DNA of 64,000 nucleotides from Adineta vaga. Lineage: Eukaryota > Animalia > Rotifera. Below the pieces are notes generated by a model, which saw nothing but the letters and a program-made list of their open reading frames with translations, was not told the origin of the DNA and did not search any database. This document shows positions 4,201 through 62,940 of the stretch, in pieces. The position numbers were made by a program, and so were the translations under genes. Every line of letters begins with the position of its first letter. Position 1 is the first letter of the stretch. The stretch is from the NCBI GenBank assembly GCA_021613535.1, contig CP075493.1, positions 1-64,000 on the forward strand, read 5' to 3'.

Positions 4201-7200
4201 AACATTGAATGAAATTGGTGTGAAATCTTATTCACAGTTTCTACATGAAACAGATCACGTGACGCATCAATTGTACATGAAAGTTGATTAAGATCCAAAG
4301 TATGATGAAAAGTGAGAATAAAATCAAATTTACTCATGATTTCATCTTCACTAATCTGAATCCAAAATGGTGCTGAACTTAATTCACTATCACCAAGCAT
4401 TATTTTATCTTGATCGTCATTTGTCATCGATGTTGTAAACTCGAATGATGTATGAAGAAATGCCGGATTTGATAGGTGAGGATGTTGTGCAAGAATACGT
4501 TGAAGTGGAAAATATGAATATTTCATACTATTTGTAATCAAGACTTGCATTTGTCGAGTGAATTGATGGAAAGATGAATGAGGATCAAGCTGACATCGAA
4601 GAGGAATAGCATTGACAAACATTCCAATTATTGATCTAAATTCATCTCGATAACGTCCATCTGTATTCATTCCAATGCATAGATCTTGTTCTCCATTGGT
4701 TAATTTGAATAAGAAGATGAAATAAGTCATGAGTGACATATATTCAAGTGATATGTTATTTGTCGATGCATATGTGAGAAAGTATTGTGAAAGATCTTGT
4801 CCAAAGTCAAACGAAATAGATGTTCCACGACCAGTTCGATGTTCACTTGCAAGACGATATCGATCATAGGGTAATGATAGAGGTTGATCGAGTGGACAAT
4901 CATAAAGAGTATTAGACCAATACATTTCTGCACCAGTCATTGACATTTGTTGTTCAATGACAGCATCTAAACAAGATAGATGATCAATGTTTTTTGAAAA
5001 GAGAAGAAACGAGAGAAAAATGTATATTTACAATCGATATAGCGTAGAGTACTGTTGTCTTGATCAATAGATAGATGACTTGTTGTATAGGCTTGATTGA
5101 GATCATGAAGAAAGATATTCATTGATCGAAAATCAAATAAAGCATGATGAAAATTAAAGATAAGTAGATCTTTATGAGAAAGAAGATCATTCGATGAGAT
5201 GATCTCCTTGTAATGTATAAGATGACATCGAAAAACAAGACCTTGAGCCAGATCAAAATATTGAGTATTTTTTCGTTCATCCTGCATTATATTGTTAAGT
5301 TGTTCATCTGTTTCATAGCTACTTTGAGTAAATGAGAACATTGTTTTGTTGTTGCGATGCTTTTGAGATGTAATTCGTTGGATGAGTTGATTGTTTTGTG
5401 TATCGAAGATGAGTGATGTATGAAGTGATGGATGTTTGTTAACAACAAGTCGAAGTGCATGATGAAGTTGTTTTATTGATAAAGTATGTTGTGCATGAAG
5501 ACGATAAACAAATGGTAGATTACTAATGAGTACTGCTTGTTGTTTGTTGAGGTCGATAGATCGTTTGTGATCAAGATAAAGACATGTTTGTGCAGATGAT
5601 GCTGGTCCTATGACATTTAGAAAGTAGTTTATTATCATGATTTGCAGAATAACAGTCAGTTGCTCTCTCATTATATGCTACTTACAGTACTTCTCCCTAA
5701 TAACGACACTAAAATGAAACTTTATTTTTGTTTTTATTCGCGTTCATCTATTTTACGACCGATTTCAAACAACTTTATATTTGGGGAATCTTTGGATGAC
5801 GCTCTTTCGAATGATATATTTCCGATCCATTTTCTCATATGTTTTCATGGAGATATCACCGGTCTACGATTGTGATGTCTTGGTGTCGTTATAACGTTCT
5901 ACTTCCGTAATAGAGACACTCAGCTATTTTTTTACCCTAATAACGACACATCCTTAATAAAAGTTGATAGATTCTTCAGCAACTATAACGAGGAGCAACA
6001 TGGTGATGAAAATCGGCTTATTGTCGTTATTAGGGTCCAAAAACTCTTCGAGAATCTCTAGAACGAAAAATAGCTAGAATTGCTACAACGGCCAAATCAG
6101 CTGACTGTCGTTATTAGGGAGAAAAAATAGTTCGGTGTCGTTATTAGGGTCACCTATTTTTTCCATTGATCCGAGATGATTTTTGTTGATATTAGGATTC
6201 TCATATGGCATGAGTCAATCGACCTGAACCGTTAGATATAGGTAGAACTTGAGACGCTCTTCAAAGTTGACTAAGGAATCTACCCTAAATTTCAGAGTAA
6301 AAATCGTCCAAAACACTTTTTTCTGAGAAGAATTCGCTTTTAGCATAAATTTTGCTTGATTGTCGTTATTACGGAAGTAGAACGTAATAACGACACCAAG
6401 ACATCACAATCGTAGACCGGTGATATCTCCATGAAAACATATGAGAAAATGGATCGGAAATATATCATTCGAAAGAGCGTCATCCAAAGATTCCCCAAAT
6501 ATAAAGTTGTTTGAAATCGGCCGTAAAATAGATGAACGCGAATAAAAACAAAATAAAGTTTCATTTTAGTGTCGTTATTAGGGAGAAGTACTGTAGTTCA
6601 TTTGATCAATGTACTAACTGCAGACGCATGTTAATTGTTTTCAATTTGACCAAACTCGATAAAACATTAGGGCTTTCTGTATGAGACTGTTAAAATTACT
6701 CAGAGGTTTGTAAAAATACAAACGATATCTGTGGAATATTGTCAGCAGCTAATATAGTTATGCTTCATGAGTATAAAATCACTCTGTAGAATCAAGGATT
6801 TCAACTTTGTTCATCACAGTTTATGTCGAACGGTTCACAGGAATACAATGATCATCATTGGAAGAAAGCAAAGAAAATTCTTTAGATTCTGCGCGAGGCA
6901 AGGAGCTTCAAAACGGGAAAATCGAAGTAAACATACTATCTTGAACTGTGTTTCTTAATGAATGCACGATGGAAGACAAAAAAAGACAATTTTCGTCTTT
7001 TGGTTTGTTTCTTTGCTAATTATTTGCGTTGAGTATACTGAGTGATGAGAGAAGGAAGAGCGGGCTGTATAGGCAATGCGTGTTGGGGCTCTAGAGTTTA
7101 TTGACAGGTTACTGACAGATCATTCGAGAAAGTGAGACGAGTTCGTTTTGACACTGACGTATCTCCAAGCAAAAATTTTTATAGTTAACGTCCTTTTAAC

Positions 7201-10200
7201 GTAGAGATATTGAGGCTGCGTAGTGTGCTCTGGGTATATTTGTATTTATTCAGTATCGGACTGGAATATAAATGTTTCAGATCTATTAGAAGCTCATTAT
7301 ATTTTCATTAGAAAGAACATTCAACTCCGCATCAACCCATACAAAAGCTGTTTTTTCTGAACGCACTACAATCAGAGATTGGACGAGTACAAATACAGCA
7401 AGTAAAAGTACAAATACTTTTTACTTAGGTTGTGTACTTAGTACAGGTACTAAGTACCATGTTGTACTAAGTACATGTACTAATGAGAGAAGATCTTCAA
7501 CAGTTCAATCGCTTTTGAGTTGATTTTTCGGCTATAGGTTGAGAGGTGGGTATCACGAGTCCAGAATAATTTTAGAAAGATTTGAGCCGCTAGGCCTTTG
7601 GGATCGAGTTATGAGGTTTTTAGTGCATTTTTGACTATTTATTCAATATTGATGGAAAAGTCAAATAACGGAGTTTTGATCTGAAATTTTGTCCTTAGAT
7701 GGGTCTATTCATCATCAAAATATTATGAAATTTTCAGCTGAAAAAATGTTCCTTGGTCGAGGTACTGGGTTACTAAAACATAATCATTTATCGCCGATTA
7801 AACGCAAAATTCAAGTTTACTTGAAAATCCAATATCTCGACCAAGGAACATTTTTCAGCTGAAAATTTCAGATCAAAACTCCGTTATTTGACTTTTCCAT
7901 CAATATTGAATAAATAGTCAAAAATGCACTAAAAACCTCATAACTCGATCCCAAAGGCCTAGCGGCTCAAATCTTTCTAAAATTATTCTGGACTCGTGAT
8001 ACCCACCTCTCAACCTATAGCCGAAAAATCAACTCAAAAGCGATTGAACTGTTGAAGATCTTCTCTCATTAGTACATGTACTTAGTACAACATGGTACTT
8101 AGTACCTGTACTAAGTACACAACCTAAGTAAAAAGTATATGTACTTGTAATGCATAAATGTACTATTTACTGAGGTTTTTTAAGTACAAAGTACGAAAAG
8201 TACCAAGTTCTGTACTACGTATCCAATCACTGACTACAATAGGGTTATCAGAGGATACGAAGTTTATAGAGCAAGACTACTCTTCATGATATCTAACACC
8301 GATTAGATCTTTTTTCGATCATTTGTCCGTGCGAATCATTCGAATTTACTAGATTGATTCATCTGTTTTTGCTCATTTTCTTTAGCTACGTGTATTCCTA
8401 TAAGACTGCAGTAAAGTTTTATTTTTATGTGGTTGGATAGTGCATTGACTATTCTGTCGAACTATATAGTTTTAATTTGATTGGCTTCTTATTTTGGTCA
8501 AAAAATTCATAAATTTCTGAAATTATTGAGAAATTATTTTTGTAAGCTGATATTTGATTTAAAGTAAAACCGACTGTTTCGAAAATAGTATTAAAGTAAA
8601 GATATTGCTGAAACTGAAAGTTAGGGAAACTATCTTCTAAAACGGTCCTGAATTTGAATAGAAAATCAAATTTTACTGTTGAAGTTTTCAACATTTTTGA
8701 ATCATCATGTATTTTGGTCCTTTATAATCAATACAAAAGAAAAACTGAATCAATGTATATATTTCTCGAATTTGAGCGAGAATATGCATTTTTCCTCGGA
8801 AACCTAACTCTGCTTCGCCTCGTAGATAGCTCCAAAAATGAAACATTCAAAATCTGATTTTGCTGATTACTTAGTTGGTATATTGAATGCATATTTCATT
8901 TTGAAGGTCAAAAGTTTGCTTTTGTTCCAGCGAAAGTGATATTTTCAATGGGTTTCATTGATGGACACATCCTCTAAGAGAAGCAGAGTGAAATTTAGTG
9001 GAAAAATAAAAGTTCTTGGTAGGGCCCAGTGGAAGTGCGATTTTTGTTCCGATCCGATCATGTTTCGGCGGAAGGAACCCGCCCGGACCTCGATCCGCTT
9101 TCTAAAAGGGAAACCCTTTCTAACTCCGTCTACTACCATTTTTTCTAAATTTTCAGGCAACGATTTTCCAGCACATGTATCGCATTAAACAGTATTCGAT
9201 ACAATTCCGCTAGTGTTATGATTTGTCAGTGGAAAGCTCATATCAAAACTTGTATACTAAAGTTCGAATTTGATTCAGTTAGATGCCATATCAGATTAAT
9301 CTGGGAAATATGAGAGGATGGGTGTGGGTGGGGGTAGATGTGAGTGTGAGTGAGGGCGTGAGTGTGAGTGAGGGCGTAAGTGTGAGTGTGATTGTGGGCG
9401 ATTTCTCAATGTAAGGCACACCACACCCACACCCACCCACGCTTACACCAAGCGAATACTACCAAAATCAACATGTATGTACATACCTTCATTAACAACG
9501 TCTGATTGTCGAGAAAATACAATATTTTTCATTTCTTCGGTTTCATTTGGTAGAATAAGATCGATTTTCGCAATAGGTGTCAGGCATGTATCAATCTGGC
9601 TAGTAATCGAATTTGATGAAAAAAGATGCTGAACAAGATATTGTAGTCGACGAGCCATCGTCTCAACTGTTGTCTCATCAAATCGATCGCGTGAGCAGAC
9701 AAAACGACATGACAATGGAGCATCATCTGATGTTGAATTGTAAATGAATGTTAGCTTAAAATCAAACTTAGCCATTTCACGAGATTGTTTCATTGTTACT
9801 TGTCCCAAATGTACACCATTGAAAGCCAAATGATCGATGTCTGAAGATACAGTTATAAAATCAAACATTATATCAAGAAATGAAGCATTCGATTGATTGA
9901 CATGAAAGTCAGCGAGAATATGCTGTAATGGATAATGAGAGTGCTCAAGAATTGATAAACGGTTTTCTTGAACATGTTTAACAAGTTCATCAAATGAACA
10001 ATGTGGATTAAGCTGGAGACGATACGGCAACGTGGAAACAAACATTCCAATCATATTCTGCAACTCACTTCGATATCGATTAGCATCGAGACACGAAATA
10101 CATAAATCAGTTCGACCATAAGTCAATTGGAATAGAAATGTGTAAAATATAGCTAATCCTGAAAGGAATGGTGTAACTTGATGTGACGATGCGTAATCGA

Positions 10201-13200
10201 GAAATAATCTTGAAATCTCTTTCTCCAATGAGATTTCAGCAATAGAAGCTAAACCTGATCGTCGCTCAGTAGATAAACGATGTCGATCAACTGGCAATAG
10301 TAATGACCGTTTGAGATTATATCCTTTCAGCTGCGAGTGCCAAAACTTACGAGATGATGTCATATCTATTAGACGTTCATGAACAGCATAATCAATATAA
10401 TCCAATGACGCTTCAACTGTCGACATTAGTGTATTATTGTTATAAGCAACGCATAGTTCTTTACAAAAGATTTCAGCAGATAACCAATCACATGCTGAAT
10501 GATGAAAAGCGATTATGAGAATATCTGATTTGACGATTAACTGACTATCTCGATTTTGACTGCCTAACTTTTGTTGTCGTAATACTTCACAATGGAAAAC
10601 ACGACCACTCGACAAATCAAACAAACTAGGATTGACTGCCATTTCATTAATAATATCGAAAAGTTCAGAGTCATTTTTATAATTTCGGTGGTCAACCAAT
10701 AGCGATCTTTGATGATTGTTAGTAATGTGTTGTTTTAAAGTATTGCCATTGTAGTCATAAATCAACGATGTTCGTAATATCTTGTGTTTACTTAAAAGAG
10801 ATTGAAGCGCACGTGACAGACGATCAACTGATAATGAACCTTGAACAATTCGTAGAGCACTTAGTTCATTATAGATACCGACTTTCCTTGAAAAGCGAAC
10901 TTCTTCATCAACAAAGATGCGCTCTTGACCGAATGACGCAGTGCCTAAACGTTTCACAAAACAAAATTTCATCATCGAAGAGAAATCTATTCCAAAATAG
11001 CTCACCTTCACTCAAATATAATTTTCTCCATTGTTTCTTTTCTTTGTTATATACAACAACTGTCTGAAGCAGTTTCGCGTGTTCAGCCACAGTATTGTAT
11101 TGAAAAAATGAGCGCATTGATAAAACTTCATTGTCAAAATTAAAAAGCGCTTGATATTCTCGATATAAATAAATGAGTAAAAGAGAATTACCCCCCGCAC
11201 TAAAGAAGCTAGTAGCAGCTGATATGCGAGGAAATAGTTCTGTATCTAATTGCCACAATTCCGAAGAGCAAATACCAGTCGAAGATATTTCATTGCAAGC
11301 GATCCCCGTCGCCTGCTTCGATCCGTCTGACTTCGACTGAATATAATACGCACCAGGTCGGTTTGTATTCAACAAACCACGCCAAATGTCCGCAATTGTC
11401 TTTTCTAGTTCAGTAGTTGGTGCTATATATGTATCTTCTTTCTGAAGATCGAATGTCGATATTTCTGGTAAAGATTTCCGATCGATTTTCCCATTTGGAC
11501 TCAATGGAAATGTTGAAAGAGTCATAAAATATGATGGTATCATATAACTTGGGAGATTTTCTCTTAAGTATGTCCTGAGTGTGTCAATATAATCTGGTGT
11601 CGATTTCACAGTCGAAATAGCTCGTTCATATTTTTGTTCATCACGAATCTTTCCCATGAACATTATATGCAATAACATGTTCCCTTTGTTCGATCCACAA
11701 TAAGTGAGTATGTTATCTAATGTCTTATTAATTTTCACTGGTAAATTTGTACGAGTACCAATTGGACACATACCAATATTCATTTCTAAACCACCATCCA
11801 TTAATAAATGCGATGTCATACCAGCTTGTAATCCGTGCTCAGATTGTCCAATATAGAAGATTGCGCATTGACAATCATTGAAAATAATTTTAGTATCGTC
11901 ATGATCACCCAAAAATAGTGGAACATCTTCTTTTATTACATCTAATTCTATATCGAAAGAGATAAGAGTACTATCTTTTTTGTCATAGATAAACCATTGA
12001 TCTTTGTTATAGTCAACAGATTTCAGATAAACAATATATTGAAGATAGTCACTATCATTAGCAATGTCTTGTTGAACAGATGAAATTGTAAAACAATGAT
12101 GAGTATCGTTCTCATCTAAGTTGATAATATGTCCATCTATCTCTTCATTATGCATAAATCTTGAAAATATGAATCCCAATTTAGATGCTTCTTGTTGAAG
12201 TAATCCCATCATATATCCTGTTTCAATTATACAAAATTGACAACCTAATGTTTTCCCATATAGAGGTGCAATGGCTGATGATCGTCCAACAAGATGTAAT
12301 CTTATACCAAGATTCTCATCATGAACACAATTATCGATTAATTCGAGAGTATGTGTGTCCGGATTATGATAATAGATACCAGGAGAAATATCATCTATTG
12401 ATGTATGAAGCTCAATATATACTTGAACAGGATAAAGACTTCCTGCTGATGCATAGCGATATTTTGGCAAGGGATGATTGTAAATATTAATTGGTGTCAA
12501 TATCGATAATAACTGACTAAGATTATCGAAATTGAAGCTTTGCAGAAATCTTTGGTTGACATTTTTCTTGGTCAGACAACATTTGTTCAACAAATGTTCA
12601 ATAGTAGACTTTTCAATGATTTCATTTGTAAACTGTCGATAACTTTTTCTTGCATAATATGTATTAATGAATGTTTCTGTTAGTTTTGGTTTCGTGAGTG
12701 CATAGCTCTTTTTGACTTCATAGTCGTGTTGTATTCCATGTCTAGCAAGTTTAAAATTAGTACGTTCAATAGGATCCGTAATTGAAATTTCTGCTTCATT
12801 ATAATCATCATTAATGACAGAATGTTTTTCTGGCATAATATATCCAATCAAGTATTGTGATGACTTATCAACAGTAACAATTGCTTGATGAATGTCAGAA
12901 TGTTGTTGTAGATGGTATTCGATTTCACCAAGTTCAATACGATGACCATGAATTTTGACTTGAAAATCTTTTCGTCCGATGAACTCAATGTATCCATCTG
13001 GATGAAATCGACCATAATCACCTGTTCGATAAAGACGCTGACCATTCTGTGGATGAATAATAAAACTTGATCGTGTTTTCTCTTCGTCGTTCCAGTAACC
13101 ATCAGCAACACCTATGCCACCAATGTATAGCTCACCATCAACCCATTCAGGACAATCATCAAGATTTGTATCATAAACATAATATTGTTGATTTCTTAAG

Positions 13201-16200
13201 GGCATTCCATAAGGAATTGATTTCCATTCTTGCGGTATTTCTTTTGGTAAAGTAAAAGCAATTGACCAAATCGATGCTTCGGTTGCACCACCTAGACTAG
13301 TTATTGTTACTTCTTCACCAAATATTGTTTGTATTGATTTTGGTAAAGATAATGGTATCCAATCACCACTTAATAAAACATGCCGTAATTGATTATAATT
13401 AGAAGTATGTTGTAAATGTTCAACTAACATTTGCATCAACATTGGAACACTATTCCAAATGGTAACATGATGTTGAACCATCATATCATACCAATGTTGA
13501 GGATTTCTATAATGTTCATGATCTGGAATAACAATAGTTCCACCAGCGATTAACATTCCAAATATATCATAAACAGATAAATCAAAATTTAGATGAGACA
13601 ATGCAAATATTCGATCATTTGAAGTGAGATTTAACCTAGTATTGATATCAAGAATAGTATTGAGAACAGCTTGATGACTAATCATAACACCTTTTGGTTT
13701 TCCAGTTGAACCAGATGTATAAATCACGTATGCCAAATCAGTCAACTGTTGTTGTCGTATTGGAAAGGGCTTTGGATAGTCGTCAAATGTGAATGTATCA
13801 ACTGGAATAGTTACCAAATGTGGAATTGCGTGATGACAATGAGATTGTGTTAGGATAATTTTTACATTCGTTTCTTCAATTAGTGCACAAAGTCGATCCT
13901 GTGGAGAATCAATATCCAATGGTAAATATGCAGCACCTGCAACCAAGATAGCTAAACAAGCAACAACTTGTTCCCAACCTTTTCTCATGAGAATAGCAAT
14001 GAGTTGGTTTGGTTGTCCTCCTTGTTGCTGTAAATGATAAGCCAATGAATAAACACGATTCATTAGTTGTTTATATGTTAAAGATTCAGTGGATGAAAGA
14101 ATAGCCCAAGCGTCAGGTGTTTGATAAGCTTGGTCTGCGATCAGTGAACGAATTCGGGGAAGCTCGATGTTCAAAGGGTGATTGGTTTGATTGAAAAGCA
14201 GTCGTCGTTCTTGATGATCAATTGGAAGAACAGAGGTAAGAGGCTGCAGCCAAGTATGATCTAATGTTGCTAAGTCGACTATGATGTTAATAAAAACGTT
14301 ATGCATATCGTTTATCAGGCCGGAAGGAAATAGAGCATCTATATAATCCCATTCAATCACTAAGTGGCCCATATCATCTTCATAAACTCGATTGTCTAGG
14401 TACACTTGAGGTGTTTGTGATACAGCATATGTTGGTTCGTCGGGGAAAATAGTTTGAATACCAGAACTAGAAGTTCGTCGGATGCCATCTTTTACATCGA
14501 TTCCACAGGTGAATACTATCGGGAAAAGAATTTGTCGACTAGCGCGTATATGCATGACTTTATTGATAAATGTGACAGTACTATACAACACATGATCAAG
14601 ATCTTCCCAAAGCTGCATTTGAACCGTTCGAATTTGATCGATGATAGCAATTGGCGTTCCAGTTTCAGTGTTGATCTCGAGTAAAATGATTGACGTAAAA
14701 TCACCCAGTATGTTATTAATATGGTGATGAATTGGTAATCGGTTGAAAAACGGCATATTGAGTGTGAAGTGATGGTTTTTACTCCACTTACTCAATACAA
14801 GTGCAAAAATAGTTGCTAAAAAGCCAGCAGAAGATATTTCATACTGTCGTATTTTAAGCTTTAACTTGTGCCACGTTTGGTCATCTAGTGTCCCTGAGAT
14901 ACGGACAAATTGTTGACTTTCTATATCATTTGGCAGACTTTTCAGTGGAAGATCTGGTCCAGAAGGAAACGACGAGAGACGACTTAGCCAATATTCTTCG
15001 TCATTTCTGTATGCAGACGTGTTTTGAATTTCTTTTTCTGCTAGAACATAGTCACGAAATGATAACGTTGGCGTTGGCAAAGTAATACTTTCATTTTCAT
15101 AAAGAAATAGTAGTTCTTGCCACATTATATTGTAGCTAAACCAATCAAAAATGAGGATATCGAAACCAAGATGCAACCTGAAGTCACGGTCAGTCCATTG
15201 CGTGATCTGAATGTCAAATAATGGCCATTTACTAGCAGGTAAAATTTGATGAGATAATAATCGTCGTCGTCTCTCTAGCTCCTCATATATATCCACTACA
15301 GGCTGCTTCCTGATATCAATAATAGGAATTTTATAGTATGGTACGTGTTCGAGAATTTGCTGTTCACTCTCTGACGGAAACACAAGTCTTAATGCTTCAT
15401 GGCGCTGAATCAAACGATTGAATGTTCGTTCAAAACGCTCAATATCAATTGGAGGAGAATCATATTCAACATAGCCGAAACCAGATACATCGCTTAGTTG
15501 GATGAAACCACTGCGCCCGATCAGATACATTTGCTGAATGTCTCGCAACGGAAAAGGTTTATACCGATGCATTTCGTCGGTTGTCACGCTAATCGCTACT
15601 TTGTCTATGTTCGAATGACTTTGTTTTATTCGCTCATTTTTGCACCGGTACACTAGAGAACTTAGCACTGGGTTTCTATAAAATATATGTAACGGTAAAT
15701 TAATCTTTAAGATTTGCTCAATTTGAGATTTTAGACGAATAACGAATAAAGAATTGCCACCAAGTTCGAAAAAATTGTCCGTCAAGCTTATTCGATCTCT
15801 ATCGAATAATACTTGCCAAATGTCCGCAATTGTCTTTTCTAGTTCAGTAGTTGGTGCTATATATGTATCTTCTTTCTGAAGATCGAATGTCGATATTTCT
15901 GGTAAAGATTTCCGATCGATTTTCCCATTTGGACTCAATGGAAATGTTGAAAGAGTCATAAAATATGATGGTATCATATAACTTGGGAGATTTTCTCTTA
16001 AGTATGTCCTGAGTGTGTCAATATAATCTGGTGTCGATTTCACAGTCGAAATAGCTCGTTCATATTTTTGTTCATCACGAATCTTTCCCATGAACATTAT
16101 ATGCAATAACATGTTCCCTTTGTTCGATCCACAATAAGTGAGTATGTTATCTAATGTCTTATTAATTTTCACTGGTAAATTTGTACGAGTACCAATTGGA

Positions 16201-19200
16201 CACATACCAATATTCATTTCTAAACCACCATCCATTAATAAATGCGATGTCATACCAGCTTGTAATCCGTGCTCAGATTGTCCAATATAGAAGATTGCGC
16301 ATTGACAATCATTGAAAATAATTTTAGTATCGTCATGATCACCCAAAAATAGTGGAACATCTTCTTTTATTACATCTAATTCTATATCGAAAGAGATAAG
16401 AGTACTATCTTTTTTGTCATAGATAAACCATTGATCTTTGTTATAGTCAACAGATTTCAGATAAACAATATATTGAAGATAGTCACTATCATTAGCAATG
16501 TCTTGTTGAACAGATGAAATTGTAAAACAATGATGAGTATCGTTCTCATCTAAGTTGATAATATGTCCATCTATCTCTTCATTATGCATAAATCTTGAAA
16601 ATATGAATCCCAATTTAGATGCTTCTTGTTGAAGTAATCCCATCATATATCCTGTTTCAATTATACAAAATTGACAACCTAATGTTTTCCCATATAGAGG
16701 TGCAATGGCTGATGATCGTCCAACAAGATGTAATCTTATACCAAGATTCTCATCATGAACACAATTATCGATTAATTCGAGAGTATGTGTGTCCGGATTA
16801 TGATAATAGATACCAGGAGAAATATCATCTATTGATGTATGAAGCTCAATATATACTTGAACAGGATAAAGACTTCCTGCTGATGCATAGCGATATTTTG
16901 GCAAGGGATGATTGTAAATATTAATTGGTGTCAATATCGATAATAACTGACTAAGATTATCGAAATTGAAGCTTTGCAGAAATCTTTGGTTGACATTTTT
17001 CTTGGTCAGACAACATTTGTTCAACAAATGTTCAATAGTAGACTTTTCAATGATTTCGTTTGTAAACTGTCGATAACTTTTTCTTGCATAATATGTATTA
17101 ATGAATGTTTCTGTTAGTTTTGGTTTCGTGAGTGCATAGCTCTTTTTGACTTCATGGTCGTGTTGTATTCCGTGTCTAGCAAGTTTAAAATTAGTGCGGT
17201 CAATAGGATCAGTAATTAATATATTTGATTGATCAAAATCATCATTAGATATAAAATATTTCTCTGGCATAATATATCCAATCAAGTATTGTGATGACTT
17301 ATCAACAGTAACAATAGCTTGATGAATGTCAGAATGTTGTTGTAGATGGTATTCGATTTCACCAAGTTCAATACGATGACCATGAATTTTGACTTGAAAA
17401 TCTTTTCGTCCGATGAACTCAATGTATCCATCTGGATGAAATCGACCATAATCACCTGTTCGATAAAGACGCTGACCATTCTGTGGATGAATAATAAAAC
17501 TTGATCGTGTTTTCTCTTCGTCGTTCCAGTAACCATCAGCAACACCTATGCCACCAATGTATAGCTCACCATCAACCCATTCAGGACAATCATCAAGATT
17601 TGTATCATAAACATAATATTGTTGATTTCTTAAGGGCATTCCATAAGGAATTGATTTCCATTCTTGCGGTATTTCTTTTGGTAAAGTAAAAGCAATTGAC
17701 CAAATCGATGCTTCGGTTGCACCACCTAGACTAGTTATTGTTACTTCTTCACCAAATATTGTTTGTATTGATTTTGGTAAAGATAATGGTATCCAATCAC
17801 CACTTAATAAAACATGCCGTAATTGATTATAATTAGAAGTATGTTGTAAATGTTCAACTAACATTTGCATCAACATTGGAACACTATTCCAAATGGTAAC
17901 ATGATGTTGAACCATCATATCATACCAATGTTGAGGATTTCTATAATGTTCATGATCTGGAATAACAATAGTTCCACCAGCGATTAACATTCCAAATATA
18001 TCATAAACAGATAAATCAAAATTTAGATGAGACAATGCAAATATTCGATCATTTGAAGTGAGATTTAACCTAGTATTGATATCAAGAATAGTATTGAGAA
18101 CAGCTTGATGACTAATCATAACACCTTTTGGTTTTCCAGTTGAACCAGATGTATAAATCACGTATGCCAAATCAGTCAACTGTTGTTGTCGTATTGGAAA
18201 GGGCTTTGGATAATCGTCAAATGTGAATGTATCAACTGGAATAGTTACCAAATGTGGAATTGCGTGATGACAATGAGATTGTGTTAGGATAATTTTTACG
18301 TTCGTTTCTTCAATTAGTGCACAAAGTCGATCCTGTGGAGAATCAATATCCAATGGTAAATATGCAGCACCTGCAACCAAGATAGCTAAACAAGCAACAA
18401 CTTGTTCCCAACCTTTTCTCATGAGAATAGCAATGAGTTGGTTTGGTTGTCCTCCTTGTTGCTGTAAATGATAAGCCAATGAATAAACACGATTCATCAA
18501 TTGTTCAAAGGTTAAGCTCCCGTGTGGTGAGAGAATGGCCCACGCGTTAGGGGACCGTTCAGCCTGTTCAATAATCATTTTATGAAGTAAATCGCTTGAA
18601 AATTTTGGTTTCCACATAGTTTCGTTAAAAGAATAGCGTCTTTGTGTTTGATCTAGTGGTAGCGAAGTAAAACTTATCTTATGCCATGATTCATCGAATA
18701 GTGCTAATTCATAAAGAAAATCAGTGTATACCTGTAACATATTTTCGATCATTCCTGGTGGAAACAAATCTTCTACATAGTCCCAAATAATGATTAACTC
18801 TCCTTTTTGTTCATAAACTTGATTATCGAGATATACTTGTGGTGTTTGGGATATGCTGTACACAGTAGATATTTGATTGTCAAACATATCATCGCCATTA
18901 GTCGGGCTGTAGTTTTGAATATCAATGCCACATGTAAAAACGATTGGTAAGACAACAGATCTTGTATTAGTATGTCGCATCAAGTCTCGAATATATGATA
19001 CCCCACTATAGGATCGGTGGTCTGAGTCTTCCCATAACTGGTTTTGAACAGTACGAACAAATTGGCTAAAAACTATCGGTTTATTCAAATTTATTTCTAG
19101 TGCGGTAAGTGAAGTGCAGTCTCCTGCTATATAATTAACTTGTGAATGCATAGGCAATCGATTGAAAATCGGCAAGTTCAAAGAGAAGTGTTTATTTTCA

Positions 19201-22200
19201 CTCCATTTAGATAAAATAATTGCATATACTGATGCCAGACAGCCGGCTGATGATAAATGAAGATCAACAACGCGCTGCTTCAACTTTTGCCAAACTAACA
19301 TCTCTACTTTTCGTTTCAAACGAGTAAATCGTTGCTCTTTTAAGTCATTTGGCCAACATCGTAACGGCAACTGTGGACCTAGTGGAAACGAAGCTAGACG
19401 ATTGATCCAATACATTTCATCTTTTTTGTACACCGACATATTCTTTATTTGATTTTCGGCCATAATATAATCTCGATAAGAGAGATTCAGTGGTGTTAAA
19501 TTAGTGTTTGGATTGCTATAAAGTTCACTTAATTCCTTGAATATCAAATGCAAACTCCATAGATCGAGAATGAGAAGATCGAAACCAACATGTAGACGAC
19601 AACGGTCTTCGCCATCAGCGATAAAACGAGTTAGCTGAATATCAAATAGTGGCCATTGATCAGCCGGTCGCACTTGATGTGATAGTTGTTTACGCCGTTC
19701 TAAAAGTTGTTCTTCTGCATATTCGACTTTGCGTAGATCGATAACAGCAAGATTATATGGAGGAACATGTTCGAGAGTCTGTTGCTCCATTTCGGATGGG
19801 AAAATAATTCGTAACGTATCGTGACGTTGAATTAGCATGTTGATTGCTTCTTCAAATCGTTTAACATCAAATGCTGGCGAGCAATCGTATTCTTGATATG
19901 AGAAGCAAGATACTTGACCAAGTTCGACATATGCACTTCGTCCGAATAAATAAGCTTGTTGAATTTCTGTCGTAGAGAAGGGTCGATATCTCGCCGAAGG
20001 ATCGTTTTTAAGCAATCCAGATAATACGAATCGATTATCCCGATATTGCTCCTCTGCTAAATATTTCTTACAATGTGCTACTAACATTGATATTATTGGA
20101 TTTTCGTAGAAGATTTGAATAGGTAAATTTATGTTTAAACTGTCTGTGATTTTTGATTTTATTTGATTGACATATATAGAATGTGCTCCAAGTAAAAAGA
20201 TATTATCATTTAAACCAATGTGTGCTACGTTAAGTGAAGCTCGACAAATTTCCATAATGTGCATTTCTAATTGACTATCAGGTGGTACATAGTCTTTGAT
20301 TTCTGATTTGATCATTGTCAGCGTTTTCCTATCCACTTTTCCATTAGACCCGATCGGAAATTGTTCTAAGACGATGAATGCAGACGGCACCATATACGAT
20401 CGAAGACGTGCATGACAGTGCTCTCTCAATTTTATCTCATCCATATGCAGCATTGACGACTGAATATACGCAACCAAATATTCGAATGAGTTTTGTTCAT
20501 TGGTGATTTTAGTGACGATGCAATTTGAAATTGAATTAGAGTAACTGAGTATTGTTTTTTCGATCTCTCCGGCTTCAATGCGTTGTCCACTCAACTTTAT
20601 TTGGAAATCTGCACGTCCAGCATGTACCAACTGGCCTTGCACATTGTATCGAGCAAGATCACCTGTCTTGAAAAATTCTTCGTTATTTATTGTCACTCGA
20701 CTGTTGCGAGTTAATTCAGCATTATTGTAATAACATTGGAAGAGAGCAGCACCTAGAAATGAATTGAAACTATATTTGATGAGAGAAGGTCACCAACTTT
20801 AAAATGCCTTTTGAGCTGATATTTGGCGCATCAGCAGATACTAGTGTGCCTAGGAAAAGCCTAAAAGCATTACGGCTAATGGCGTTTTCTCTTCGAGTTA
20901 TGGTCAATTTACTGAAAGTTTACCCTATACATTGATATAGGAATGAAAATCGCGTGATCATGGTTTGGCCTGATTTTTTGTTCATAGATAGTACCAAGTG
21001 TAGATATCATACCCTGAAAATTCCAGATCAATCGGACTCTTCATTCACGAGACAAAAAGTTTTTTTATAAAATGAAGGACTTTTTAAATCGTTTGTATAA
21101 TACGAGCACCTTTTTGAAACTTTTTTTTTCGTGAATGAAGAGTCCGATTGATCTGGAATTTTCAGGGGATGATATCTACACGTGGTACTATCTATGAACA
21201 AAAAATCAGGCCAAACCATGATCACGCGATTTTCATTCTATATCAATGTATAGGATAAACTTTCAGTAAATTCACTCCTCAAATGCTTTTCTCCTAACAG
21301 ATAAATTTCGCCAATTTCGTTTAGACTTGACGGTGAAATTATTTGTCCGTCGGCTTCTTTGACTAGGAGACACCGATAATCGGCTAGTGGATAACCGATG
21401 GGCAATGCCTCTGAACTTACAAGTTCATCAGCATTTTGTTTGATTTCACAGCCAATAGCAGTATTGGTTTCACTCATACCAAACGCAATAAAAAGACGAA
21501 TTTGTGATGCGAAAAACTTTACTTTAGCCAGATATCGTGAGTCCGAGGTCTCGCCTGCTGTCCACAAGATGCGTACTTGTCCAAGTGTTTCTTTTGGTTT
21601 GCTGTTACGAGCTTCGAGATAGTTTATAAAGACTTTAAGCAACGATGAGCCGATAAGAAGAACCGTAGCTTGTTTGTCTTTGATAATAGAGGCCAGACGA
21701 TCCATGTTTAAGTTATCACCTGGACGTAGGAGTACTAAAGTGCTGGAGGGAAACACGCTTAGCGACATAAAGATTTCATAGATATGAATAATCCATGATG
21801 AGGCAGTTAATTGAAGAACCTTCTCGCCATGTTCTACCTTCCAATTGATTAGAGTTCGAATACTTTCTGCCAGACTTCGATGTGTGTGCACAATTGCTTT
21901 AGGTACACCTGTTGTGCCCGATGTACAAATGATGAAACTTTGACTCCTACTCTTGATAAAGATCTCTAAATAATGTATGCTTCATTGCGAAAATGCATTC
22001 GTGCAAGAACAAAAATGTTACCTTTCTGATCAATATCTTCTGTCATAAGACTCATCGATAAAATATTGCTAAGATCGATAAGCTGAATTCCTTGACTGTC
22101 GATGCTGACAAACCTCTGACGCGTATTTCCATGTACCAGAACGATTTCGCCTTGAACATTGTCAAGCACCGAACGAATCCGAATGGAAGAATCAGCCAGA

Positions 22201-22451
22201 CTGAGTGGACAATAGACACCACCAGCACACATGATTCCCAATAAGCCGCATACCATCTCTAAGCTGCGATCGATATATTGACAAACAATTTGGCCGATTT
22301 CAATTTGAAGATGATGAGCGACGTAAGTCACACTTGCCAATAGTTCACTGTATGTCAACGTTTGATCCTCGAGCTCGATTGCTATTTGCTGAGGAGAAGT
22401 GTATGCGACGTCGAAGAACATTTCAAGAACGTTTTTTGATGATGAAAACAT
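1..22451 (-). CDS. Giant multi-exon nonribosomal peptide synthetase, A-T-Cy-A(Ox)-T-Cy-A(Ox)-T-C-C-A-T-C..., 3' end outside the window
   Basis: Exons read manually: 22451-22022, 21965-21294 (or -21276), 20752-11006, 10944-9487, 5607-5032, 4966-3879, 3817-3518, 3462-3132, 2337-1333, 1274-<1. All junction phases are consistent (1,1,1,1,1,0,0,1,1). Splicing rebuilds split motifs such as TSGTTGVPKA, LRYID|YAVIEQQM, ERSISM|VIGIMAI, PKA|AQIRH and CSSG|EPF. About 16.9 kb of CDS; no in-frame stop seen. Confidence 0.93.
1333..3817 (-). CDS. NRPS exons 7-9: adenylation domain A4 (Ser-like code) and T domain
   Basis: AYIIFTSGSTGVPKA, FDIHVQE, WNLYGPAE, YRTGDL, GRKDFQVKLHGQRIELGEIE, NGKIDRK, IGGHSL. Introns at 3463-3517 and 2338-3131. 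Region 2337-1862 translated manually, no stop. Confidence 0.9.
3879..5607 (-). CDS. NRPS exons 5-6: second tandem condensation domain (HHALFDF) and start of A4
   Basis: KHPSLHT, FHHALFDF, IIGMFVNAIPLR, MSKFDF. 65-nt intron at 4967-5031. Confidence 0.9.
5683..6595. mobile_element. Tc1/mariner/pogo-type MITE in an NRPS intron
   Basis: TA|CAGTACTTCTCCCTAATAACGACAC...GTGTCGTTATTAGGGAGAAGTACTG|TA, with inverted arms of about 225 bp and repeated TAATAACGAC motifs. Confidence 0.9.
7373..8232. mobile_element. hAT-type MITE/foldback in an NRPS intron
   Basis: 8-bp TSD ACTACAAT (7365-7372 and 8233-8240), termini CAGAGATTGGA...TCCAATCACTG, near-perfect internal inverted repeat at about 7420-8135. Confidence 0.92.
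9320..9441. repeat. GT/CA-rich simple repeat with inverted ends next to an NRPS donor site
   Basis: GGGTGTGGGTG...(GTGAGT)n...CACCCACACCCACCCAC. Confidence 0.6.
9487..10944 (-). CDS. NRPS exon 4: condensation domain (HHSACDW)
   Basis: ASFGQER, KHKILRT, FHHSACDW, YIDYAVHE, NMIGMFVSTLPYR, AKFDF. Bounded by phase-1 introns 10945-11005 and 5608-9486. Confidence 0.9.
11006..20752 (-). CDS. NRPS exon 3 (9747 nt): end of A1, T1, then two Cy-A(Cys)-Ox-T thiazole-forming modules
   Basis: ORF 10908..20696. T motifs GAHS, GGNS, GGNS. Cy motifs IQQAYLFGR/IQQMYLIGR, DLLILDLWS/DILIFDWFS (DxxxxDxxS), FNRLP, GDCTS/GDFTS, PIVFT, SQTPQVYLD. A domains FDLSVYD/TIWNSVP/LLSGDW/SLGGATEASIWS give code DLYNLSLIWK (Cys). 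Ox motif KYRYASAGSLYPVQ is inserted between A8 and A9. Confidence 0.95.
11381..18497. repeat. Near-identical 2683-bp direct repeat (11381-14063 and 15815-18497) covering the A(Cys)-Ox domains
   Basis: Constant 4434-bp offset. Only scattered SNPs apart from one divergent patch at about 12720-12830 versus 17154-17264. Confidence 0.97.
20906..21272. mobile_element. Foldback/MITE in NRPS intron 2
   Basis: Inverted arms of about 155 bp (20906-21060 versus 21118-21272). Confidence 0.85.
21294..22451 (-). CDS. NRPS exons 1-2: starter adenylation domain (N-terminal core), atypical specificity pocket
   Basis: Motifs LTYSEL, AGGVYCPL, FIICTSGTTGVPKAIVHTH, WTAGE, FGMSET, PIGYPL, GEIYLLG. 56-nt GT-AG intron at 21966-22021. 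No upstream C domain. Confidence 0.88.
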
Positions 22452-35525: not shown

Positions 35526-35601
35526 TAGGGATGTAACAATACCAATACCCACCAATACCAATACTATTGGTATTGGAAGTATTGGTATTGTTACATCCCT
35601 A
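35526..35601. mobile_element. 76-bp palindromic hAT-like MITE at the Helitron/transposase junction
   Basis: TAGGGATGTAACAATACCAATAC...GTATTGGTATTGTTACATCCCTA. The flanking 8-mers differ. Confidence 0.85.
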
Positions 35602-52288: not shown

Positions 52289-55200
52289 ATGGAAAAGAAA
52301 ACAATCATACTATATGGTGACCGTCTCACATTAGATGATTTGGTGTCCATCGCTCGCTGTCGTAGTGCCGTTCAGTTGACTGACAATGAGAATATAAAAA
52401 ATCGTATGAACAGATCAATAGATATTATACAAAATATTGTGAAAAATAACTTGCCATTGTATGGTGTCACTACTAGCTTCGGTGGTCTTGCAAAAAATAC
52501 TATCTCGGGGCAATATGCGGATGAACTGCAAAGCAACCTCATTTTAGCATTGAACATGGGCGCCGGTCCGACTTTACCTCTTGAAACTATTAGAGCTGCA
52601 ATGGTTTTACGCGCTAATGCACATTTAATTGGAGCATCAGCTATTCGTCGAATATGGGATGAACGTCTGATTTTATTCTTGACTAAGAATGTGACTCCAT
52701 TAGTGCCTGAATTCGGATCAATAGGAGCATCAGGTGATCTCGTTCCTATGTCATATATTGCGGCGGCTCTTGGTGGCAACGATAATCGAATCCTTGTCGA
52801 TTTTGATGGTAAAACTATGAGTGCGCCAGATGCTTTAACTATATTAAATATTGAATCGCTAACATTTGTACCAAAAGAAGGATTAGCCATGGTGAATGGC
52901 ACAAGTGTCATGGCTGGTTCTGCAGCTCTTGTTACTTACGATTTTGCAAAATTATTTGCCGCTACTCTTCACGTTCATGCTATTGCTATTCAAGCACTTG
53001 TCGGTGGCAATCAATCTTTTCATCCATTTGTGCACCATGTCAAACCTCATCCTGGACAAGTAAATAAGATATTATCTTTTTTTGCACCTCCCGTCATTTA
53101 AGATTAGAAATCACAACAAATTAATCTTATAAAGCGAAAACGTTCTGCTGTAGATTAGTAGAATAGTAAAATGTAATCTAGATTTTGTTTAGAGCGGTCT
53201 GATTATCGCAAATTTTAATGATGTTACATTTTGCTAATTACTGTCTGCTCATTTTTCAAAACGAAAAGACTGTTGTATATTCTAGATTCAGCTAGATTCT
53301 TGTTCTTTCAGCCGTTTGTTGGAGCTGATGTAAGAATAGAAAATCATAATACGATTCCGTAGACACTTTAGTGTTTTCGAAACGAAGATAATGTTTGATT
53401 ACAGATGCTGGAAGTCATTGGTTACAATAACCCCAAAATGGTGGTATACGGTTACTCAATATGCCGGATATCTTTGTGTAACCAAAATCGTGACCGAGCA
53501 CAAACTGTAGAGTATCTGTTTGATAGACGTGATATTAGGGCTATATGCAACACTATCGTATATGAATCATATCTGAAACTAAACCGGCTGAGTTTCGTCG
53601 GTCTTTTACCGGTGTTTTAAAGTTTTCAGCCACTGAACTTTACGTACTTTAACCCTTTTTAAGAATTTCCATTGCATTACTAGACAGCAAATATAGTCCT
53701 AAAAGTTTTCCATTAATAAGATTCAATTGTAGTTGAGAACTGTAGCTCTAAATGTTTTATTTATCCTTTTATTAGAGGCTCATATCAGATCGAATGAATA
53801 TATTATAGTCAAAAGTCAGCCAACTTTTATTAGAGAATGTCAATTGAAACTGAAAGCTTTTCATCGAGGATGTCCGGCAGGATAGGGGGAGGGTTACCTA
53901 CCTTAAGTATTGGAAAATTTTGTTGGTTTCGTTCGTTAATTTTTGAAATGTTTACAAGAAGTTTTAAAAATTGGCAATATCCGCTTCCCAATATTTTCAA
54001 TTTCGGGAAACCGCTATTTTCACCGTAAAAAATATTGGAGCCATCCGTATGCAGGAGTTTTAGCTAACTTTTACAGAACTTGGACAGCTATCAATATTCA
54101 GGGTATACTTTCATAGTGGAATATTTTAAAAATGTTATCTTTATTGTCGAAATCTTTGTGACTTATAGCATTATATAACCCTAATAATATTTGATATTCA
54201 CAAATTCTAATTAAAAAATCTAATATAAAAACCTCACATATTAGTTCACCTTTTCTTTCTCGATATAATTCATTGCACAGCAGATACGACTAACTCATAG
54301 ATTATGTGCTCAGTCGCAATCACGAATTTCGATAAAATTTGACTCATGTGTAACTTTAAGGGAGATAAAAAAATGCCTGAAGTTTCATCTTCTAAAACCC
54401 TTCTATCGTTGAGATATAAGAACAGCGGTGGAGGTATTCTAGGAACAAAAATTAAGAGGAAATGACAGTAATCATAGCAGCACGCGTACATTGTATACTG
54501 CGCCATTCTTCAGCAAACGATTTTAGTCATGAATTTTTCCTAGTGTATATTATTGTCGACGCTCTGCATACTGACACAATCAAAATCCTTTTCGACGTAC
54601 TAAGCGATACAGAAGTACTTAATAGATTCTAGATATAGTGCTCTATACAATTCTATCTTGTGAGATACTGTTTGATTAAAAGTCGGGAGCCTTTTAACGA
54701 AAGCAATAATCACTTGCTGAGAACGGGAAAAAAGTAAAAGAGGTGTTTGGAATTTGTGAAGAAATGTTCTAGTTTCTTTCGTGTCTGTGCAAAGACCTAT
54801 CTTAAAAGGCTCAAATTTTGGATGTAGGATTTTTTATAGGCTCTTCCATGTTCGATAATAAAATGAACACGCCAAAAGTTTTCGTGTTACTAGATGTTTT
54901 TAGCGAGCCATGGATTGTCTGTCAACTTAAAAGTATTAATATGAATTCGTATGTTATAACCAAAATTAACCGTTGCATTTGGTTCAACAAAAACGAACCA
55001 AATCCTACCTTTAGTTTCTTGTGGTTGGAGAAAAAAACTAACACTTATGTTTTATTGACAGGTTGATATAGCTAGTATTATGCTTGATCTTCTCGACGGC
55101 TCCAAACTTATCAGCGACAACCTTGACGCTAATCTAACGCAGGAAAACGTGGATCGGCTCATTCAAGATCGATATTCTATTCGATGTTTACCGCAATTTT

Positions 55201-56673
55201 TAGGTCCCATGCTAGAAACACTACGTGATGTTACTCGAACACTTGAAATTGAAATGAATTCGGCTAATGATAATCCTCTGGTTGATGTTAGTACATCCAA
55301 AGTATATCGTGAGTATAAACTCGGTATAGATACAGAATGTTTCAAAAAGTCTGCTCGAATTGAACAATTGTAACAAACACTAGAGAATATTTATATAAAT
55401 ATGACTTTGAAAAACGCTCGACAAAACGAGTAGCCGGATATTCGCCAATAGGACTTTCGCTATTGGCGAACGTCCACTAATCTTTCGCCAATATACCTTC
55501 TCTACTTTCGCCAATTGACGAAAGTCTATTAAAATTGCGCTAGTATTGGCGAAATTCTATTAATCTTTCATTTATATGGTTATAAATTTGGTATCGAGTA
55601 AAGATATCATCGTTTGTTAGATTCTACTGCACATATGTTAGTACGTTTTAATAATGTCACTCAACTTTTGCCAATATTGGCGAAAGTTCATAGGATTCTT
55701 GTCAGTTTATGTTGGGACATTCGCCAACTGGCGAAAGTTTACAGATTTACGTGATCAATTATCAACATATTATAAAACGCATGAAGCAGCCTGAGTCAGA
55801 TGGTTCAAAAAGTGATATCAAAAGGCGGTGGGGATATCGATGTACCAATAGATGCGTAGAGTTTCAGATGTATCCATGACTTATTTTGAAGGCAGAAAGT
55901 CTTATTAACAAAGAGCTGATATCAGTTGAGAGTCAATGATATCATGATTCGCTGCCAATTATAGCCATGTAGGTAACTTCTTGGGAGAACTCTTACGTAT
56001 GATGTCGATGGATCGTCTTCGTCAATCCATAGGTTTAATGGCTAAACATTTGGATGTTCAAATAGCTCAATTAGTTACACCTGAATTTAGCAACGGTCTT
56101 CCTTCGTGTCTTATTGGCAATCAAGATCGTCCAGTTAATATGGGACTGAAAGGACTGCAGTTGTGTGGAAATTCGATAATGCCATATTTACTGTTTCTTG
56201 GTCAACCAATGGCCGATAGATTTGCTACTCATGCTGAACAATATAATCAGAACGTAAATTCTATGGGACTTACATGTGCCCAACTCGCTCGTCAATCGGT
56301 AAATGTCATGAATCAATATATCGCCGTTTGTCTTCTATTTGTCGCTCAAGCAGTTGATTTACGTGGTAAAATTCATTTTAACACTTATGATCCACGTTTG
56401 TATCTTTCGACCTCCACGGTGCAAACGTACGAAGCTGTTCGAACCATCGTTCAGGCTGAGATTGATTCGTCACGTCCGTACTTATGGGATGATGGTGACC
56501 GTGCAGTAGACAAAGATATTGCTAAACTTGCTGGTTCGTTGGTGGACGAAAATTCACCTCTGGTTGCAGCTTTACATTCTACCGTTAAACAACTTCGTCA
56601 TTCCAAAATAAAACCTGACTCTTCTCTAACCAAAATATGCGATTACGGGAGTAATACGACAAACGGATCTTAG
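52289..56673 (+). CDS. pal: MIO-dependent aromatic amino acid ammonia-lyase, cyanobacterial PAL type (3 exons, about 572 aa; exon 3 acceptor uncertain)
   Basis: Exons 52289-53059, 55062-55308, about 55973-56673. Catalytic YGVTTSFGG, MIO-forming GSIGASGDLVP (ASG at 52727-52735), KEGLAMVNGTS, QSFHPFVH..KPHPGQ, IQDRYSIRCLPQ, NDNPL, AKHLDVQIA, FSNGLP, VNMGLKGLQLCGNSIMP, HAEQYNQNVNS. From memory these are colinear with Anabaena/Nostoc PAL. Confidence 0.9.
55436..55740. mobile_element. Repeat-rich element in PAL intron 2 (TTCGCCAAT/ATTGGCGAA motifs)
   Basis: About seven copies of the motif in both orientations. Confidence 0.55.
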
Positions 56674-59531: not shown

Positions 59532-59889
59532 GACTGTTTTTTAGCGTGCTGTTCAGCAACTAATACCGTTTTATACAATTATAATGATTAAATATCGTCA
59601 AGCGCTCATATATATAGTTTGAGTAATCTCTTACTTTTGTTCTGAATTCTATCAATTACAAATGAACGATTGTCGCATTTGCGAACAAACGTCACAACGA
59701 GAAAGTTTCCTTACGAGAAAATGTCTGTTTCCGATGAATATATGTTTTAATAATAAAGGATATTGACCGTGGAAATTTCCATTCTGTAACACTTCATATT
59801 TTGGCCTTTCGCTAGTCTCTGTAATCTTTATAGTGAAATCTCTTAGTATCAAACCACGAATAATTCTGTCTTGTGCGCAAAAATTACAT

Positions 59890-62800: not shown

Positions 62801-62940
62801 ATTATTCGTGAGCTGATTGGATTGTATCCTATTAATGCCTTTTTCGCTTGAATGCTCAGTAAGAACCCCAACCCATCCTAGCATGTGAGGACGCTTCTCC
62901 TGTCCATCGAACTTCTGAAATACCAATTATATCGTATCTA
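59890..62940 (-). mobile_element. Decayed non-LTR retrotransposon (RTE-like; AP endonuclease plus RT)
   Basis: EN motifs YVYAPT, ILTGD, IDLIFI, SSDHS. RT motifs RQSDPLSSLLF, LRFADDIDL, FEYLGS; C-terminal RGRP..W. Many stops and frameshifts. Confidence 0.9.
60795..61651. mobile_element. Non-autonomous DNA transposon inserted in the LINE RT region
   Basis: TIR GGGCTTGTCCA/TGGACAAGGCC with AGTA duplicated on both sides. Removing it restores LINE codons GKVLLIVL. Confidence 0.85.

Follow-up and report, generated by a model that had tools for sequence, protein, structure and literature searches.

Most adenylation (A) domains of nonribosomal peptide synthetases (NRPSs) that carry neither Asp nor Glu at position 235 activate aryl, keto or hydroxy acids (bioRxiv 10.1101/559534), and in the keto-acid A domains an aliphatic or hydrophobic residue takes the place of Asp235 (PMC10949194, PMC13643306). 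Bdelloid rotifers possess a family of NRPS and polyketide synthase (PKS) genes in which the NRPS genes are horizontally acquired, intron-bearing and subtelomeric (Nowell et al. 2024, PMC11258130; PMC10531068), and these NRPS genes have been proposed to make antimicrobials against fungal pathogens (PMC11258130). Here we describe an NRPS gene of the same group of organisms, which sits at the tip of chromosome 1 of Adineta vaga, in a window of 64,000 nucleotides that comprises the first 64 kb of contig CP075493.1 (assembly GCA_021613535.1). The initiation A domain of this gene (termed A*) has Ile in the Asp235 column and, as its sequence indicates, belongs to a rotifer clade of starter domains from which Asp235 has been lost; it is predicted to load a carboxylic acid without an α-amino group. 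To our knowledge, no product of any bdelloid NRPS gene is known.

The gene is annotated as “hypothetical protein I4U23_000002 [Adineta vaga]” (P0151, 4085 residues, 100% identity by word search). Pfam assignments (AMP-binding, PP-binding, Condensation and Nitroreductase), translation of open reading frames (ORFs) and P0151 together give the architecture A*-T-Cy-A(Ox)-T-Cy-A(Ox)-T-C, in which T denotes the carrier, Cy the cyclisation, Ox the oxidase and C the condensation domain. A* is encoded on the minus strand at window positions 22451-20325, interrupted by two introns, and the plus-strand frame across the same stretch is full of stops. It comprises the following elements:

22022..22451, minus strand: exon 1 of the starter A domain, Pfam AMP-binding at E=1.2e-12, equal to the N-terminus of P0151
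22451-22449, minus strand: start ATG; paralogues open with the same M-x-S-S-K-N-V
22358-22338, minus strand: A1 motif LTYSELL, in exon 1
22229-22200, minus strand: A2-like motif CAGGVYCPLS, in exon 1
21966..22021, minus strand: intron 1 of 56 nucleotides, GTAAC...TTTAG by sequence reading; P0151 has the same junction, …DIDQK-E-IFIKS…
21276..21965, minus strand: exon 2, the A3-to-A6 core on which this analysis centres, Pfam AMP-binding at E=8.9e-26 and TIGR01733 at 94.7 bits
21898..21924, minus strand: A3 P-loop TSGTTGVPK, intact; its T, S, G, G and K do not vary across the 70 aligned sequences
21769..21798, minus strand: A4 motif SWIIHIYEIF with Trp234, Ile235, Ile236, His237 and Tyr239, by motif search and HMMER alignments
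21792-21790, minus strand: Ile codon in the Asp235 column, by HMMER alignments
21469..21483, minus strand: A5 motif FGMSE in place of the usual YGPTE (Pro325 to Met, Thr326 to Ser), by motif search and core comparison
21292..21312, minus strand: A6 core GEIYLLG, the G-E columns of which are nearly invariant in alignment A1
21291-21277, minus strand: in-frame extra EKHLR of five codons after A6, by sequence reading
20325..20752, minus strand: first part of exon 3, encoding the C-terminal subdomain of A*, by Pfam and motif reading
20666-20646, minus strand: A7 motif TGDLARY, by motif reading
20618-20574, minus strand: A8 hinge GRADFQIKLSGQRIE, by motif reading
20399-20382, minus strand: SYMVPS, by motif reading
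20345-20325, minus strand: A10 motif NGKVDRK, with the Lys517 codon at 20339-20337, by motif reading

Position 235 was assigned from five HMMER alignments to solved NRPS A domains, from motif anchoring and from the Foldseek match to GrsA (PDB 1AMU). In all five alignments the Trp-Ile of A* faces the Phe-Asp of the FDxS motif and no Asp falls in the column, in agreement with an earlier, sequence-only reading of this DNA that had placed Ile (21790-21792) there. The positions given in that reading are correct, and the gene runs on the minus strand, where SWIIHIYEIF lies at 21798-21769 and FGMSE at 21483-21469. The hydrophobic code IIYLWAATAK proposed in that reading was re-derived exactly by core-motif anchoring, with 235 I, 236 I, 239 Y, 278 L and 299 W, followed by 301 A, 322 A, 330 T, 331 A and Lys517; the reference code of GrsA is tabulated in PMC11355689. 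None of the code positions of A* holds an acidic residue. Within the gene, the two Cys-type A domains carry FDLSVYD (18020-18000 and 13586-13566) and serve as comparators. The motif SFDIHVQEIL (3363-3334), previously taken as the same-gene comparator, had to be given up in this role, as the NCBI gene model ends at 9446; it probably lies in a gene of its own or in a fragment. Of 496 other A-domain cores, collected as best database matches, 471 have Asp in the 235 column and 447 have Pro in the 325 column, and therefore both deviations are real and unusual. Thus, A* displays neither Asp235 nor YGPTE, the two marks of an A domain for α-amino acids. Its A3, A7, A8 and A10 motifs are intact and lie in invariant columns of alignment A1 (70 sequences).

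By sequence and predicted fold, A* is a genuine A domain of the NRPS type, and none of its ATP-binding or catalytic motifs is missing. Residues 1-520 of P0151 match PF00501 at E=3.5e-39 and AMP-binding_C weakly, below the cutoff (1.3e-3, 20.1 versus 24.5 bits), and the top NCBIfam family of the domain is TIGR01733 (amino-acid adenylation), with no family of aryl-acid ligases among the best matches. Exon 2 matches NRPS A domains in the PDB down to E=3.9e-20, the chains of bacillamide synthetase BmdB among them, and its 47 PDB matches at E<=1e-3 include no chain of the aryl-acid ligases DhbE or EntE; the neighbouring ACSF2-like ligase matches DhbE/EntE at about 1e-28 to 1e-34. An AlphaFold (AF2) model of P0151 residues 1-505, built from the NCBI spliced protein and hence without the A6 core, has a predicted local distance difference test score (pLDDT) of 91.3 and a predicted template modelling score (pTM) of 0.92. 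Its top Foldseek matches in the PDB, at E ~1e-40, are EntF, Txo2, GrsA (1AMU, E=7.7e-40), ApnA and LgrA, and DltA is matched as well. NRPS-type or related amino-acid-activating A domains dominate the list, and no aryl-acid ligase occurs among the 50 best structural matches.

In the A. vaga genome (six contigs, 100.8-Mb, 36% GC), further A domains without Asp235 were found at C4:382 kb (SRIVH), C1:1146 kb (SWIIH), C6:1140 kb (TWILQ) and C1:213-217 kb (QWTLH). An exhaustive representative search retrieved ten further proteins at 37-54% identity with the pattern W-[ILVAGN]-[IVLM]-H, one of them degenerate (SSTH); those with a species name belong to Adineta steineri, A. ricciae and Rotaria socialis. 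A maximum-likelihood tree was built from 91 A cores, with L004 (C6:1140 kb, TWILQ) left out because an intron splits its match. In this tree the Asp235-less rotifer domains form a single clade supported by a Shimodaira-Hasegawa-like approximate likelihood-ratio test (SH-aLRT) value of 99, with the C1:216 kb domain as the first branch. The clade is nested in a 22-row group (SH-aLRT 99) together with Asp235-bearing domains of A. vaga, which indicates a single loss of Asp235 that took place among the rotifer A domains. The closest relatives share at most 54-55% amino-acid identity and synonymous sites are saturated; the Asp235-less state has been kept through deep divergence in two rotifer families. 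In every member with a full-length gene model the Asp235-less domain is N-terminal, and one member, P0053, continues with T-Cy as I4U23_000002 does. Taken together, these residues and positions define a new, monophyletic clade of predicted starter domains marked by Trp234, a residue other than Asp at 235, His237 and a residue other than Pro at 325. By term search the clade is undescribed in PMC11258130, in which Asp235, starter units, thiazoles and ammonia-lyase do not come up, and in PMC10531068, where Asp235 and Stachelhaus are likewise absent; the gene itself is annotated.

Loss of Pro325 accompanies loss of Asp235 in this clade: none of the ten clade proteins has Pro in this column, and the A5 motif reads YGLSE, YGQSE, YGMTE, YGTSE or FGMSE. 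In sequence terms, FGMSE of A* is thus one variant of a clade-wide Pro325 loss, and the two motif deviations that had been noted separately in A* are one clade signature. The YGPTE motif reportedly adjoins the Gly324 backbone contact. Two unrelated A domains without Asp, P0128 (FVAS..., YGQSE) and P0059 (LVSH..., YGLTE), also lack Pro325, a pairing that hints at a general coupling of the amine-binding Asp with the Gly324-Pro325 turn. One paralogue, L003 (P0043; C1:1145225-1148719), has retained SWIIH with its P-loop and A5 destroyed, and the NCBI model of P0043 joins it to a protein that runs into ion-channel-like transmembrane sequence.

Downstream of A*, exon 3 continues as one long open exon from 20752 to 10911 (3262 codons), and the remainder of the gene is organised as follows:

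20046..20333, minus strand: carrier domain T1 with the core LGAHSI, Pfam PP-binding at 33.7 bits against a cutoff of 20.8
20180-20178, minus strand: codon of the T1 phosphopantetheine Ser, by motif reading
10911..19973, minus strand: Cy1-A(Cys)-Ox-T-Cy2-A(Cys)-Ox-T in the same open exon, by Pfam, ORF translation and P0151
19583-19563, minus strand: DxxxxD motif of Cy1, FDLLILD, by motif reading
11011-9446, minus strand: C domain across a further intron, from P0151

No KR domain was found in the modules of I4U23_000002 by Pfam scan. The two A(Cys)-Ox-T stretches (window 13500-18200) encode more than 1000 residues without a single difference, whereas the Cy domains that precede them differ markedly, and therefore the duplication or homogenisation is limited to the A-Ox-T part. 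A stop follows the C domain at 9445-9443, with a donor-like GTATGT site just upstream. Past the C domain, ~3.7 kb (5677-9446) has no coding potential and includes TH/TC-rich low-complexity sequence; beyond this gap, a new C-A-T-C series is cut off at base 1, where the chromosome ends.

We propose that A* loads a carboxylic acid that is not an α-amino acid. This is the best reading of the domain, with a likelihood that we would put a little above an even chance, because Ile235, the lack of an acidic code residue and the starter position fit the published pattern. The claim that the starter loads a non-amino acid had already been made from the sequence; it stands as likely, given the missing Asp235, the starter position and the clade-wide loss, but its kinship with aryl-acid ligases falls away. 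In the proposed mechanism, A* would adenylate an α-keto, α-hydroxy, aryl, alkenyl or alkyl acid, that is, one without an α-amino group. The acid would then be loaded onto the Ser of T1, and Cy1 would condense it with cysteine and cyclise, so that in the bithiazole product the acid would stand as 2-substituent on the first thiazole. The code does not give the identity of this acid, and a cinnamic-type acid derived from a phenylalanine ammonia-lyase (PAL) is one among several candidates. A lyase of this kind is encoded further into the window:

52289..56673, plus strand: PAL-like, cyanobacterial-type MIO ammonia-lyase of at least three exons (52289-53101, 55059-55370 and 55981-56673), Pfam Lyase_aromatic

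The best PDB matches of the lyase are the Nostoc and Anabaena PALs (E about 1e-74), and the ASG triad is present. At the substrate-selectivity switch in its exon 1 (52600-52620), it has Ala-Leu where the Nostoc and Anabaena enzymes have Phe-Leu, and judging from this switch its substrate may be other than phenylalanine. The gene starts 30 kb from the starter domain, on the opposite strand, with a Helitron and the ACSF2-like ligase gene in between. The Helitron-type Rep (Helitron_like_N) and PIF1 helicase are encoded on the minus strand at window 34500-38920, which places them between the NRPS gene and that of the acyl-CoA ligase. The ACSF2-like ligase (40445-42340) is a member of a large rotifer family named ACSF2 in UniRef. 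It was considered as a cluster member, for example as a cinnamate-CoA ligase, and rejected as evidence of a conserved trio, given the size of its family and the ACSL type of the ligase beside the second PAL gene.

Only three PAL paralogues are present in the genome, and chromosome 1 carries all of them in its first 0.5 Mb. PAL2 (C1:234.5-245.9 kb, 57-58% identical) lies 17 kb from an Asp235-less domain at C1:213.3-217.4 kb that has FQWTLH as A4 and YGSAE as A5, and between the two lie an ACSL-type ligase (225.3-229.1 kb) and an ABC-transporter remnant (~230.4 kb). In these two regions the genes between PAL and NRPS are non-homologous, and the sole other shared sequence is a reverse-transcriptase element, which accounts for the ORFs in common; a third gene shared by both PAL neighbourhoods was therefore rejected. 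The RVT_1 element lies at window 59800-63100, and C1:197.9-198.8 kb and C1:210.2-212.4 kb carry diverged copies of it. Around PAL3, no NRPS lies within about 20 kb, and no PAL is found near the starters at C4:382 kb, C6:1140 kb and C1:1146 kb. We regard the link between PAL and NRPS as weak; the two proximities are suggestive, and they may descend from one old duplication.

The reading of A* as a non-amino-acid starter has to be weighed against several observations on its pocket and, further below, on the gene itself. Rare Asp235-less domains that bind amino-type substrates are known, such as ClbH-A2 for S-adenosylmethionine (SAM) and ATRR for glycine betaine (bioRxiv 10.1101/559534). In the clade, position 235 is I, L, V, A, G, N or T and the pocket residues vary, and therefore its members share a substrate class at most, not one substrate. 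By analogy with these exceptions, A* might hold an amino-type substrate by a non-canonical grip, either a betaine-like acid in an aromatic cage of Trp234, Tyr239 and Trp299 or a SAM-like molecule. A* does have these three aromatics at or beside code positions, and in the Asp235-less ATRR A domain a F/W/W set plus a Glu binds glycine betaine (bioRxiv 10.1101/559534); however, A* offers an anionic residue at no code position, Tyr239 is unconserved in the clade and Trp299 occurs in 5 of 10 clade proteins, and we consider such a substrate very unlikely. Still less credence can be given to an EntE/DhbE-type aryl-acid AMP ligase recruited in cis, which we regard as next to impossible. FGMAE is the A5 motif of DhbE and EntE, and the F-G-M-x-E look of FGMSE, which had been called aryl-acid-like, is the one point in favour. 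It loses its force as A5 varies within the clade and as A* forms one polypeptide with T1 and the other NRPS domains, whereas the EntE/DhbE type is stand-alone. Membership in that family was rejected, with TIGR01733 as the best family, no DhbE/EntE match at E<=1e-3, a clade position among rotifer amino-acid-type domains and a predicted fold that turned out to be NRPS-type, against the aryl-acid reading. A narrower version of the non-amino-acid reading has the starter load cinnamate or another product of the PAL-like lyase, in which case PAL and NRPS would form a functional neighbourhood that makes an aryl- or styryl-capped bithiazole. The lyase does have the Nostoc and Anabaena PALs as nearest matches and the ASG triad, two of the three PAL paralogues lie 17-30 kb from an Asp235-less A domain, and the chance of this double proximity is ~0.002-0.08 by null model, a rough post hoc arithmetic. 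These points are set against the 30 kb distance, the opposite strands and the intervening Helitron and large-family ACSF2-like gene, the different, ACSL-type ligase beside PAL2, the three clade members without a nearby PAL and the PAL3 without an NRPS. Moreover, the two domains next to a PAL gene differ in code at every one of the first five positions (235-299), the pocket would be bulkier than that of GrsA at 236, 278 and 299, and the subtelomeres of A. vaga are generally rich in foreign genes. On balance we hold this version to be unlikely. Its boldest extension, in which bdelloid rotifers would have evolved, within the animal lineage, an NRPS initiation class of their own by loss of Asp235 and Pro325 from an amino-acid-type A domain and, in two chromosome-1 neighbourhoods, paired it with horizontally acquired cyanobacterial-type PALs to make cinnamoyl- or styryl-capped bithiazoles, is more doubtful again and is offered as a speculation.

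The observations on the gene itself begin at its second intron, which contains a large palindrome:

20753..21275, minus strand: intron 2 in the favoured model, 523 nucleotides, donor GTGAAT, phase 1, by paralogue comparison
20903..21275, no strand: near-perfect palindrome of 373 nucleotides inside intron 2, by repeat search, its outer edge being the GTGAAT donor

The NCBI model instead splices from a weaker-looking GTCTAA donor at 21326, by which LNEIGEIYLLG is lost from the protein, the nearly invariant Gly-Glu of A6 included. The GTGAAT donor keeps A6, at the price of the five extra in-frame residues that follow it; paralogue L004 shares this donor, and the introns of L002 and L004 have the same position and the same phase. 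At 523 nucleotides the intron contrasts with the other introns of the gene and those of the paralogues (~50-70 nucleotides), and it holds palindrome arms of 122 nucleotides (97% complementary) and 38 nucleotides (95%) around a 54-nucleotide centre. A miniature inverted-repeat transposable element (MITE) was considered for the palindrome and rejected, as no other copy occurs in the genome; the palindrome has the appearance of an inverted duplication that arose locally, or of a foldback in the assembly, and not of a transposon. Among the indexed runs none yielded an assembled transcript, and no RNA-labelled run has the stretch; in four runs no contig covers exons 1-2. Two contigs (222 and 151 nucleotides), both from a single run only guessed to be RNA, cover exon 3 without splice joints, and independent DNA runs of 2013 contain 86% of the words of the stretch. 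At the chromosome tip, the terminal C domain of the gene has no A-T partner; one A-T pair is apparently missing, and the assembly line therefore has a rearranged look. Finally, three relatives (L002, L003/P0043 and P0003) have degenerate P-loops, showing that the clade tolerates decay. From such features A* could be seen as the vestige of a decaying or rearranged subtelomeric NRPS, in which the loss of Asp235 in this copy would be of no consequence, the domain being unexpressed or inactive: the missing transcripts and exon 1-2 contigs, the aberrant intron with its palindrome and competing donors, the A-T pair absent after the C domain that ends at 9446, the next C-A-T-C truncated by the chromosome end and the dead P-loops of the paralogues would all fit. 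Yet exons 1 and 2 and the 3262 codons of exon 3 are open at 36% GC, the catalytic motifs are all intact in a domain modelled at pLDDT 91, the extra 15 nucleotides at the end of exon 2 are in frame, and the Asp235-less state is ancient and kept across genera. We consider a vestige improbable, and retain the loading of a non-α-amino acid as the preferred reading.

If this reading holds, its meaning reaches beyond a single gene. Standard predictors cannot name the substrate of a domain without Asp235; a shared, old loss of this residue would provide a reading rule in their place, by which a non-amino acid should cap the N-terminus of many rotifer assembly-line products. It would also represent a convergent evolution of non-amino-acid selection inside an A-domain lineage of the amino-acid type. 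The A*-T didomains could offer a route to the first building block of an animal-made thiazole peptide, and the pairing with PAL, if true, would amount to an animal-encoded hybrid of plant-like and bacterial chemistry.

Comparison with described systems reveals partial similarities to each. DhbE and EntE, whose A5 motif is without the Pro of YGPTE, provide NRPS lines with an aromatic starter acid that has no amino group, in their case for catechol siderophores; unlike these stand-alone enzymes of another ANL subfamily, A* lies in cis and has Trp-Ile-Ile at positions 234-236. The order of starter A-T, Cy-A(Ox)-T and terminal C is the same as in thiazole-forming lines such as bacillamide BmdB and the bithiazole modules of bleomycin. 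Those systems are bacterial and their starters load amino acids (Ala and β-Ala), whereas the starter described here is without the amine-binding residue. The ATRR A domain resembles A* in being NRPS-type, in lacking Asp235 and in having aromatic pocket residues, and its code likewise defeated predictors (bioRxiv 10.1101/559534); however, ATRR has a cation-stabilising Glu and is an A-T-R-R reductase, while A* has no acidic code residue and stands in a Cy-containing line. The keto-acid A domains (Ak/KAL) of cereulide, cryptophycin, dolastatin 15 and StsA are in-line domains that have a hydrophobic residue for Asp235 and keep Lys517 and the ATP motifs (PMC10949194, PMC13643306, PMC11355689), and A* is like them in having Ile235 and Lys517. 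Their modules have a KR and form ester bonds, whereas no KR was found here and Cy comes next, which together with the independent origin of the clade argues against a strict keto-acid (Ak) assignment. Bacterial KALs have been described as a separate sequence class, whereas the starter clade arose among Asp235-bearing domains of rotifers, and therefore the likeness of A* to the KALs would be convergent.

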